64,000 bases of DNA from Anthoceros angustus. Its lineage: Eukaryota; Plantae; Anthocerotophyta. The position numbers and the translations under genes were made by a program. Of this stretch, positions 12,735 through 17,028 are shown piece after piece. The stretch is from positions 1,488,001 through 1,552,000 of the forward strand of contig MU008167.1 in assembly GCA_010909165.1 (NCBI GenBank), written 5' to 3'. Position 1 is the stretch's first letter. Every line of letters begins with the position of its first letter. The notes beneath the pieces are model-generated. The model saw only the letters and a program-made list of their open reading frames with translations. It was not told where the DNA came from and did not search any database.

Positions 12735-15700
12735 ATGGCGGGAGCCTGGCTGGTCCTGCTTGCTGTGAGTGCTGGAGTGGATTGATTTGATGTGTAGTTT
12801 GATGCCGGTTGATCGGGTTACAGTTTGAGATAATGGTATGGTGCTGGTGATCTATGCAGGTTATGGCGACTGCTGTAAGCAGCTCCGCAGTGGTAAGATC
12901 TTTTAGAGCAAGAATTGAAATTTGTTGAGAGCAGCTTATCATGGAATAATGGATACTGTAGTGCAATGCCATAGCTTGCAATTGCTGATTTGGAATCAGC
13001 GTGACCAGATGCTGCGAATTGAAATGTGTTTGCTTGTGTGATTGGCAGTCCTTGTCGAACGGTGCACGGGGCCAGCAGATGAGTTGCTACGACGATGCGA
13101 AGCTTAATTTGCAGAATCCAGTGGTTTCCAAGATTGTTGTGGTGGAAGACGAGGAGAGAAACATTCGCTGCTTCAGTCCGGTCTATGTCGACAAGCTTGC
13201 CAGTCCTCGATTCATGAAGCTGGAGACGGCTGTACAAGAGGATGTGGAAGAGTCTGCATACAAGCACGGTGTGGCCAGCTCGGGGAAGTACAAGAAGGAG
13301 GAGAAGAAGGAGGAGAAGAAGGAGGAGAAGAAGGAGGAGAAGGAGGAGGAGAAGCATGAGGATAAGAATGAGGAGAAGAGGGAAAGTAAGAAGGAGGAGA
13401 GGAAGGAAGAGAAGCAGGAGGAGAAGAAGGAGGATGAGAAGCACGAGAAGGAGGACGAAAGGGAGAAAAAGAAGAAACGTGGCTGGAAATGGTTAGAAAG
13501 CAAGAAAAACGAAGAAAAGAAGGAGGAGAAGGGGGAGGAGAAGAAGGAGGAGAAGCATGAGGATAAGAAAGAAGAGAAGAGGGAAAGTAGGAAGAAGGAA
13601 AAGGAGGAGGAGAAGAAAGAAGAGAAGAAGGAGGACGAGAAGCACGAGAAGGAGGACGAAAAGGAGAAAAAGAAGAAACGTGGCTGGAAATGGTTAGAAA
13701 GCAAGAAAAACGAAGAAAAGGAGGAGGAGAAGGGGAGGAGAAGAAGGAGGAGAAGCATGAGGATAAGAAAGAAGAGAAGAGGAAAGCAGGAAGGAGGAGA
13801 AGGAGGAGGAGAAAAAGAAGAAGGAGGACGAGAAGCACGAGAAGGAGGACGAAAAGGAGAAAAAGAAGAAACATGGCTGGAAATGGTTAGAAAGCAAGAA
13901 AAACGAAGAAAAGAAGGAGGAGAAGGGGAGGAGAAGGAGGAGAAGCATGAGGATAAGAAAGAGAAGAGGGAAAGCAGGAAGGAGGAGAAGGAGGAGGAGA
14001 AAAGAAGAGAAGAAGGAGGACGAGAAGCACGAGAAGGAGGACGAAAAGGAGAAAAAGAAGAAACATGGCTGGAAATGGTTAGAAAGCAAGAAAAACGAAG
14101 AAAAGGAGGAGGAGAAGGGGAGGAGAAGAAGGAGAAGCATGAGGATAAGAAAGAGAAGCAGGAAGGAGGAGGAGGAGGAGAAAAAGAAGAAGGAGGACGA
14201 GAAGCACGAGAAGGAGGACGAAAAGGAGAAAAAGAAGAAACATGGCTGGAAATGGTTAGAAAGAAAAACGAAGAAAAGAAGGAGGAGAAGGGGAGGAGAA
14301 GGAGGAGAAGCATGAGGATAAGAAAGAAGAGAAGAGGAAAGCAGGAAGGAGGAGAAGGAGGAGAAGAAGGAGGACGAGAAGCACGAGAAGGAGGACGAAA
14401 AGGAGAAAAGAAGAAACATGGCTGGAAATGGTTAGAAAGCAAGAAAAACGAAAAGGAGGAGGAGAAGGGGAGGAGAAGAAGGAGGAGAAGCATGAGGATA
14501 AGAAAGAGAAGAGGAAAGCAGGAAGGAGGAGGAGGAGGAGAAAAGAAGAAAAGAAGGAGGACGAGAAGCACGAGAAGGAGGAGGACGAAAAGGAGAAAAA
14601 GAAGAAACGTGGCTGGAAATGGTTAGAAAGCAAGAAAAACGAAGAAAAGAAGGAGGATGAGAAGCACGAGAAGGAGGAGAAGAAAAGAAGAGAAGAGGAA
14701 AGTAAGAAGGAGGAGAAGAAGGAAGAGAAGCAGGAGGAGAAGAAGGAGGATGAGAAGCACGAGAAGGAGGACGAAAAGGAGAAAAAGAAGAAACGTGGCT
14801 GGAAATGGTTAGAAAGCAAGAAAAACGAAGAAAAGAAGGAGGAGAAGGGGAGGAGAAGAAGGAGGAGAAGCATGAGGATAAGAAAGAAGAGAAGAGGAAA
14901 GTAGGAAGAAGGAAAAGGAGGAGAGAAGAAGAGAAGAAGGAGGACGAGAAGCACGAGAAGGAGGACGAAAAGGAGAAAAAGAAGAAACGTGGCTGGAAAT
15001 GGTTAGAAAGCAAGAAAAACGAAGAAAAGGAGGAGGAGAAGGGGAGGAGAAGAAGGAGGAGAAGCATGAGGATAAGAAAGAGAAGAGGAAAGCAGGAAGG
15101 AGGAGAAGGAGGAGGAGAAAAAGAAGAGAAGAAGGAGGACGAGAAGCACGAGAAGGAGGACGAAAAGGAGAAAAAGAAGAAACATGGCTGGAAATGGTTA
15201 GAAAGCAAGAAAAACGAAGAAAGGAGGAGGAGGAAGGAGGAGGAGAAGAAGGAGGAGAAGCATGAGGATAAGAAAGAAGAGAAGAGGGAAAGCAGGAAGG
15301 AGGAGAAGGAGGAGGAGAAAAAAGAAGAGAAGAAGGAGGACGAGAAGCACGAGAAGGAGGACGAAAAGGAGACAAAGAAGAAACATGGCTGGAAATGGTT
15401 AGAAAGCAAGAAAAACGAAGAAAAGGAGGAGGAGAAGGGGGAGGAGAAGAAGGAGGAGAAGCATGAGAATAAGAAAGAAGAGAAGAGGAAAGCAGGAAGG
15501 AGGAGGAGGAGAAAAAGAAGAGAAGAAGGAGGACGAGAAGCACGAGAAGGAGGACGAAAAGGAGAAAAAGAAGAAACATGGCTGGAAATGGTTAGAAAGC
15601 AAGAAAAACGAAGAAAAGGAGGAGGAGAAGGGGAGGAAGAAGGAGGAGAAGCATGAGGATAAGAAAGAAGAGGAAAGCAGGAAGGAGGAGAAGGAGGAGG

Positions 15701-17028
15701 AGAAAAAGAAGAGAAGAAGGAGGACGAGAAGCACGAGAAGGAGGACGAAAAGGAGACAAAGAAGAAACATGGCTGGAAATGGTTAGAAAGCAAGAAAAAC
15801 GAAGAAAAGGAGGAGGAGAAGGGGAGGAGAAGAAGGAGAAGCATGAGAATAAGAAAGAAGAGAAGAGGAAGGAGGAGAAGGAGGAGGAGAAAAAGAAGAG
15901 AAGAAGGAGGACGAGAAGCACGAGAAGGAGGACGAAAAGGAGACAAAGAAGAAACATGGCTGGAAATGGTTAGAAAGCAAGAAAAACGAAGAAAAGGAGG
16001 AGGAGAAGGGGGAGGAGAAGAAGGAGGAGAAGCATGAGAATAAGAAAGAAGAGAAGAGGGAAAGCAGGAAGGAGGAGAAGGAGGAGGAGAAGAAAGAAGA
16101 GAAGAAGGAGGACGAGAAGCACGAGAAGGAGGACGAAAAGGAGAAAAAGAAGAAACATGGCTGGAAATGGTTAGAAAGCAAGAAAAACGAAAAGGAGGAG
16201 GAGAAGGGGAGGAGAAGAAGGAGAAGCATGAGGATAAGAAAGAGAAGAGGAAAGCAGGAAGGAGGAGAAGGAGGAGGAGAAAAAAGAAGAGAAGAAGGAG
16301 GACGAGAAGCACGAGAAGGAGGACGAAAAGGAGAAAAAGAAGAAACGTGGCTGGAAATGGTTAGAAAGCAAGAAAAACGAAGAAAAGAAAGAAGATGAGA
16401 AGGAGGAAGAGAAGCATGAGAACAAATACGAAGAGAAGCATGAAAGTAAGAAAAAGGAGAAAAAGGAAGAAAAGCTGAAGGAGGAGAAGGTAGCCGAGAA
16501 GAATAAGGAGAAGGATAAAAAGGCGAAGCACAAGCATCATCCTCGTCACCATCACCATAAAAGACGTGCATATGAGGAAGAGAATGCAGCCTACGAACTC
16601 TCCAGTGCAGACTGCGGGAAGTGGGTTAAAGATGGAAATTATCAGCTCAAGGTTTGCACAATTCATCCTCTGGACATGCTGATCTAGTCATAGTTTCGGA
16701 TTTCTGTCAGCTTGCTGGATTTCAGCCTGGACATCCAGGCTCCCTGGAGACTACTGTTCTCAGGAATGGTGGTGTTGACGTCTTGCAGACTGTAAGCTTG
16801 GACTACAACAACGGTGAGAAGCTCGTGGCTCTGGAAGGTTACAGTACCAGTGGAGTGGGAAGCGAAGTGATCACGACCCTGACCATCAAGACCAGCAACC
16901 AGCATGTGACCTTCGGGAAAGCAAACGGCCAGGGGAACTACTTCAGAGCTGATGGCTCGGAACTCAAAGCTTTCTCCTGGTGCCAGAGCAAAACTGATGG
17001 CCTGAAGAGCATTAAGGTTGCGTTCTGA
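12735..17028 (+). CDS. Predicted secreted K/E-rich repeat protein with a jacalin-like lectin domain
   Basis: Micro-exons 12735-12764 (MAGAWLVLLA) and 12860-12874/12892; long exon 13049-16651; intron 16652-16710; last exon to 17028 encodes VSLDYNNGEKLVALEGY...VITTLTIKTS..TFG...GLKSIKVAF (jacalin-like). The frame breaks repeatedly in A/G runs of the repeat. Confidence 0.72.
13290..16480 (+). repeat. Coding tandem repeat, about 16 units of 175-200 bp
   Basis: GGCTGGAAATGGTTAGAAAG (GWKWLES) occurs 16 times between about 13480 and 16370; the plus strand is almost purely A/G. Confidence 0.95.

Follow-up and report, generated by a model that had tools for sequence, protein, structure and literature searches.

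Does the hornwort Anthoceros angustus encode a single lectin domain that is interrupted by a charged repeat of more than a thousand residues, or is the gene at this place built in some other way? The question is raised by a locus on contig MU008167.1 (assembly GCA_010909165.1), within a stretch of 64,000 nucleotides (positions 1,488,001 to 1,552,000 of the forward strand; hereafter the window, whose own numbering is used for all coordinates), for which an earlier note had proposed a jacalin-type β-prism split by such an insertion. The locus is a coherent single gene model of four exons on the plus strand of plant nuclear DNA, and the evidence supports one transcription unit for its three parts: an N-terminal part (N part), a tandem array rich in lysine and glutamate (K/E), and a jacalin-like C-terminal piece (C part). 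We favor, with a probability of about 0.45, a lineage-specific secreted fusion of ~1,330 residues whose frame breaks in the array are probably assembly errors. The product would comprise, in this order, a signal peptide, a small β-rich N-terminal module, ~1,080 residues of K/E-rich repeats of 67 residues, a His-rich linker, and a divergent jacalin-like prism at the C-terminus. The repeats would derive from a young coding tandem array, which may serve as an extended, hydrated spacer or form a self-associating helix with striped charges, and may carry the lectin-like head in the wall or mucilage.

Gene anatomy, repeat array and jacalin-like end

The splice sites of all four exons are canonical and in phase, which supports the gene model (Table 1). 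Exons 1 and 2, both with lengths that are multiples of 3, join exon 3 in phase. The first 21 residues have a mean Kyte-Doolittle value of 1.83, end with SSSAV, and judging from this hydrophobicity are a probable signal peptide; the product would be secreted. The last intron, for which an alternative in-frame acceptor ends at 16725, separates exon 3 from the C part, the N part being read in frame 2 and the C part (16711–17025) in frame 1. The two outer positions that the earlier note had given for the lectin, 13049 and 17028, coincide with the start of exon 3 and with the stop codon, and the peptides quoted from this segment do lie where they had been placed, but the segment is not one open reading frame (ORF). 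Nor is the jacalin exon a separate gene, because no ATG occurs in exon 4 or in the 414 nt before it (16238–16651, frame 2); two separate genes are ruled out by this lack of a start codon. The unique end of exon 3 continues in the open frame of the last repeat unit, likewise with no ATG.

The large charged repeat expected between the N and C parts is indeed present, as an array of 17 units and ~3.25 kb that is K/E-rich in one frame. Its base composition is A 51%, G 40%, C 5% and T 4%, and a 13-mer marker, TGGCTGGAAATGG, occurs in it in 16 exact copies. Only one frame of the consensus, here called frame A, is free of stops, and the motifs RGWKWLESKK and KHEDKK appear in it once per unit. In this frame, codon position 2 is A in 54–58 of the 67 codons, and 10 of the 16–17 pyrimidines in each unit fall at codon position 3, with one at position 2. 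Periods found across the array by Tandem Repeats Finder (3, 9, 12, 15, 21 and 57) are mostly multiples of 3. The periodicity of the array is of the coding type. Over the initial 2.3 units, frame A coincides with the frame of the N part; the last unit is again in the N-part frame, which runs on through ~150 nt of ordinary composition to the donor and is in phase with the jacalin exon. The array thus combines codon periodicity with a consensus frame that lacks stops and agrees in phase with the exons on both sides. The array is not intron-like in composition, with 4% T against 32–37% T in the three introns of the gene. A word search with the repeat gave no match, and Pfam recognized no family in the repeat, the spacer or the end of exon 3.

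The minus strand at 13183–16571 carries ORFs of 220–626 amino acids that are rich in S, P, L and F and contain extensin-like SPPPS strings. A minus-strand gene was rejected, as these ORFs of up to 626 amino acids merely mirror the purine-only strand. Such a strand keeps several frames open on both strands, and therefore long ORFs are weak evidence here. Two to three frames remain open wherever a sequence is purine-only; a long "ORF" there proves little, and the mirror ORFs are a trap for ORF-based annotation.

The proposed likeness of the C part to jacalin holds. The last exon matches Pfam PF01419 (Jacalin) with 27.9 bits (E 3.5e-6; 16765–16968 against profile positions 52–120 of 136), above the gathering cut-off of 22 bits for this family, and 26 of the 30 nearest clusters of the C part in the ESM Atlas are jacalin (score 0.92, 197 shared features). 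When 1.84 billion representatives were searched with phmmer, the C part retrieved two spurious repeat proteins alone, with no jacalin and no self-match; phmmer against the PDB gave no genuine match, and a word search found no relative. On sequence grounds, the C part is of the jacalin lectin type, though strongly diverged, and otherwise an orphan.

Profile position 52, with which the Pfam match opens, falls on an "NGG" loop, where jacalins carry their HGG/GG loop. The 31 residues right before it (13 that end exon 3 and 18 that open exon 4) start with G-K-W...D-G and show a β-like alternation; they could provide strands 1–4 as a compact set. We think that the last ~120 residues form the prism, or most of it, alone, and that the repeat would precede the lectin module and split nothing. 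The earlier note had also read LKSI for the usual LDSI of the binding site. The Lys is present, in G-L-K-S-I at 16999–17013, where jacalins have the sugar-binding Asp ("LD.I"), but its equivalence to this Asp was assigned by eye alone, outside the Pfam-aligned stretch; the decayed copy nearby reads, again by eye, G-L-K-G-I at the candidate position. With the usual Asp apparently replaced by Lys, the ligand may differ from the canonical one. A His-rich patch at 16520–16560, H-K-H-H-P-R-H-H-H-H, separates the repeat from the lectin-like end and is possibly a metal- or pH-sensitive linker.

Table 1. Features of the four-exon gene and its 3′ surroundings, in window coordinates.
Feature	Position	Strand	Description
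Exon 1	12735–12764	+	ATG and 10 codons, hydrophobic start of probable signal peptide; donor gct|GTGAGT; from sequence and translation
Exon 2	12860–12892	+	11 codons, remainder of probable signal peptide; acceptor tgcag|, donor gtg|GTAAGA
Exon 3 (giant)	13049–16651	+	Acceptor ggcag| at 13048; donor AAG|GTTTGC at 16651/16652
N part	13049–13285	+	79 amino acids, opens exon 3; small β-rich module
Tandem array	13286–16540	+	17 units of 176–201 bp; full unit 201 bp = 67 codons; K/E-rich
Unique end of exon 3	16541–16651	+	37-codon spacer: His-rich linker, then short β-patterned stretch (CGKWVKDGNYQLK)
Last intron	16652–16710	+	59 nt, GT..AG, phase 0, T 37%
Exon 4 (last)	16711–17028	+	105 codons and stop TGA (17026–17028); jacalin-like region
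AATAAA, possible poly(A) signal	17061–17066	+	33 nt past the stop; pattern only
Decayed duplicate	18604–18953	+	74% identity to the last ~33 codons and 3′ flank (16926–17274), in-frame stops; from blastn, tblastn and sequence

Frame breaks and the standing of the gene

Several observations weigh against an intact fusion. No ORF crosses the array as assembled: frame A shifts in 19 of the 31 intervals between T-containing landmarks, a rate about that expected without constraint, and a stop-free path across the array requires at least five frame switches. One frame is not kept throughout, 9 of the 17 unit lengths not being multiples of 3. Miscalls of G3 as G2 would be unusual for accurate reads. 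At the lectin-like end, the 51 profile positions that precede the match have just 31 residues to fill them, and the prism may be incomplete without another piece; structure prediction of the C part alone with AlphaFold2 (AF2), run without an alignment, gave a predicted local distance difference test score (pLDDT) of 36 and no usable fold, and with an alignment confined to profile positions 52–120 a complete 12-strand β-prism I is putative. Finally, no homologue, transcript or second assembly was found, exact look-ups of two nearby ORFs returning no record of the locus; this absence says little, since the source assembly is missing from the contig collection.

The frame that enters the array from the N part terminates at a TAG at 14624. 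The breaks themselves have a peculiar distribution. One-base gaps in the array (n = 22) are found at short runs in all but one case, with 10 at G5, 9 at G3 and 3 at an A6 run; nearest-neighbor units differ by 0–1 substitutions yet by 2–6 indel events; and the net frame across the array is zero. Assembly errors are suspected because homopolymer indels exceed substitutions, unlike in ordinary divergence, and on this pattern we regard real mutation as the less probable source of the 1–2-bp frame breaks, and errors of the long-read consensus across a low-complexity repeat as the more probable one. Through homopolymer errors, a live gene with such a purine-only array can pass for a dead one, and the reverse.

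Were the frameshifts real, the gene would be dead or dying: translation would end at the TAG at 14624 after ~545 residues (21 of the signal peptide and 525 of exon 3), and the jacalin exon would be an untranslated relic. This alternative, which we consider unlikely, agrees with the absence of an open frame across the array, where 12 of the 31 intervals stay in frame as they would without constraint, with the failure to find relatives or an entry among the 1.84 billion representatives, and with the apparent loss of the sugar-binding Asp. Against it, units with 0–1 substitutions but 2–6 indels are hard to obtain by real mutation, the net frame of the array is zero, and no damage is seen in the signal-peptide exons, at any of the six splice sites, in the N part (79 codons), in the spacer (37 codons) or in the C part (105 codons). 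The partial copy of the 3′ end that lies downstream bears on both sides. It is plainly decayed, as a sister of a dying gene might be; the contrast between its stops over the last 33 codons and the intact 105 codons of the present copy is a hint of selection.

Less likely still is that the array is removed as an intron, from a donor at 13268|13269 or 13385|13386 to an acceptor at 16589|16590 or 16610|16611, leaving a secreted protein of ~200–240 residues in which the N part almost adjoins the jacalin-like end. All four candidate sites, two donors and two acceptors, are of phase 1, and any pairing of them is in frame; the second acceptor coincides with the start of the β-patterned stretch, and removal would account for the apparently unconstrained frames inside the array. 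The candidate sites are weak, however (ACG|GTGTGG and AAA|GTAAGA), and an intron of 3.3 kb would stand beside gene introns of 59–156 nt. Plant introns are recognized via their U-richness, and GAR repeats serve as exonic enhancers; the array has 4% T where the introns of the gene have 32–37%. The codon periodicity of the array further indicates coding sequence, as does a stop-free frame that keeps phase with the sequence on either side.

Downstream of the gene, short echoes of the stop-codon region (17020–17102) occur twice more, at 22100–22182 and 19899–19934. The downstream tandem array of pentatricopeptide repeat (PPR) and tRNA sequences seems to have copied a unit beginning inside the last exon of this gene. 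Upstream of the decayed duplicate, at 18401–18590, there is an ORF with a β-patterned stretch (..QVVQVDQVKRWDVQNVKIDLVW..) that is loosely parallel to the jacalin strands before the duplicated part; to judge from this patterning, it may be the remnant of an older, more diverged paralogue.

The N-terminal part and the proposed split prism

The proposal from which this study set out was a single β-prism I with strands 1–4 in the N part (13049–13285) and strands 5–12 in the last exon, and with the loop between strands 4 and 5 enlarged by an insertion that is translated and exceeds 1,100 residues. Four points speak for it. First, the N-part motifs stand, by eye, in a jacalin-like order: G..G, YDD, V.KI.V, a four-residue turn, I..F..VYVD and HG..SSG. 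Second, AF2 places a β-hairpin (residues 26–34/39–46) precisely on the V.KI.V / I..F..VY pair. Third, the Pfam match of the C part opens at profile position 52, and the first 51 positions need a source. Fourth, one gene contains all three parts.

The eye pattern is not recognized by any of the tools, however. Pfam found no family in the N part at E ≤ 10, with filters that are insensitive to short weak pieces; phmmer against the PDB gave no match; the best ESM Atlas score was 0.81, with no consistent family; BLASTP showed no similarity between the N part and the C part; and a word search with the N part inside a 541-amino-acid ORF gave no match. The N part thus failed to match the N-terminal third (strands 1–4) of the jacalin profile, whereas the equally partial C part was recognized immediately. 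Modeling supports the earlier note as far as the hairpin on the quoted motifs but adds a helix at residues 54–71, all at a pLDDT of ~50–70, and the ~30 residues of the N part predicted to be helical have no place in a prism. In addition, the HGG position is already filled on the C side by an "NGG", which the 31 β-patterned residues precede, and a split prism requires translation of the whole array, which the assembly disallows. One lectin domain divided by the repeat finds no support from any tool, its N part unrecognized and its ORF broken, and we regard it as improbable. If it were true and the array translated, the loop would be by far the largest known in a jacalin-type fold, and the protein would be a natural "split lectin" whose halves meet across a very long tether; full translation of the array, together with an N part that supplies strands 1–4 to one prism with a nested insertion of ~1,150 residues, 85% of them charged, is what we rate as the least probable of all.

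Nature of the repeat and comparison with known systems

Under the favored reading of a secreted fusion, whose translation through the whole array we infer, the physical character of the repeat matters. In frame A the repeat is 85% charged, with near-equal numbers of acidic and basic residues and a period-4 EEKK pattern. For the "disordered loop" of the earlier note, AF2 predicts an unbroken helix of 126 residues (84–209, pLDDT 82–95), though the charge pattern is unlike that of known single α-helices; AF2 tends to over-call helices in such charged sequences, and this one is a prediction only. The predicted helix is long and lacks a hydrophobic seam, as an ER/K helix would. The enrichment of opposite charges at i,i+4 was not found: 20 such pairs were observed against 52.8 ± 5.0 in 500 shuffles, a depletion, with 84 same-charge pairs. 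A typical ER/K single α-helix is ruled out by this depletion. A repeat of the Rubisco-linker type was also rejected: the W-K-W-L spacing misfits W-[RK]-x-x-[LIVA], and the N-terminus resembles a signal peptide. The repeat would be a helix with striped charges and a tendency to pair or, alternatively, a disordered polyampholyte with well-mixed charges; "disordered loop" and "rigid rod" are both putative descriptions of it.

If the gene is intact, plant jacalin-type lectin fusions would have an undescribed partner, a very long and young K/E repeat, and the locus would be a clean case of a coding tandem array expanding in a secreted lectin gene of an early-diverging land-plant lineage. The protein could then bear on hydration of the wall or mucilage, or on interactions with microbes.

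The nearest relatives in fold are the jacalin-related lectins (PF01419, β-prism I), which include fusions with other modules. The last exon has its strand motifs in the sequence usual for this family, beginning at the GG loop and closing with the C-terminal L.SI.V.F. It differs in its extreme divergence, as phmmer finds no jacalin and the alignment is restricted to profile positions 52–120, in the apparent Lys at the position of the binding Asp, and in having a low-complexity K/E repeat as the fusion partner. In the literature searched, no jacalin turned up that is joined to a K/E repeat or broken by one; the earlier note likewise knew of no description of the architecture. Jacalin of Artocarpus is a two-chain β-prism after proteolytic removal of a short linker of about four residues near the N-terminus. 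Its prism strands thus come from two separated stretches of one precursor, as in the split reading; the gap proposed here would exceed 1,100 residues and would follow strand 4, and membership of the N part in the fold is only putative. Compact β-prisms of the size of griffithsin have ~120 residues. The ~118 residues from CGKW to the end are of similar size, and by this argument from size only a complete prism without the N part is sterically plausible.

The ER/K single α-helices of myosin VI/X and DBHS proteins (PMC4647456) resemble the repeat in its ~85% charge, in the near-equal content of E and K and in the helix predicted by AF2. The i,i+4 opposite-charge pairs that define them are depleted in the repeat, which has its period-4 EEKK pattern instead. 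For a loop nested in a β-prism, the nearest precedent is Vibrio cholerae Bap1, whose 57-residue adhesive loop contains repeats, is aromatic and basic, and binds lipid; it indicates that the fold tolerates insertions (PMC12965690). The bacterial loop of 57 residues contrasts with a K/E polyampholyte of more than 1,100 residues in the hornwort gene, where nesting is only putative.

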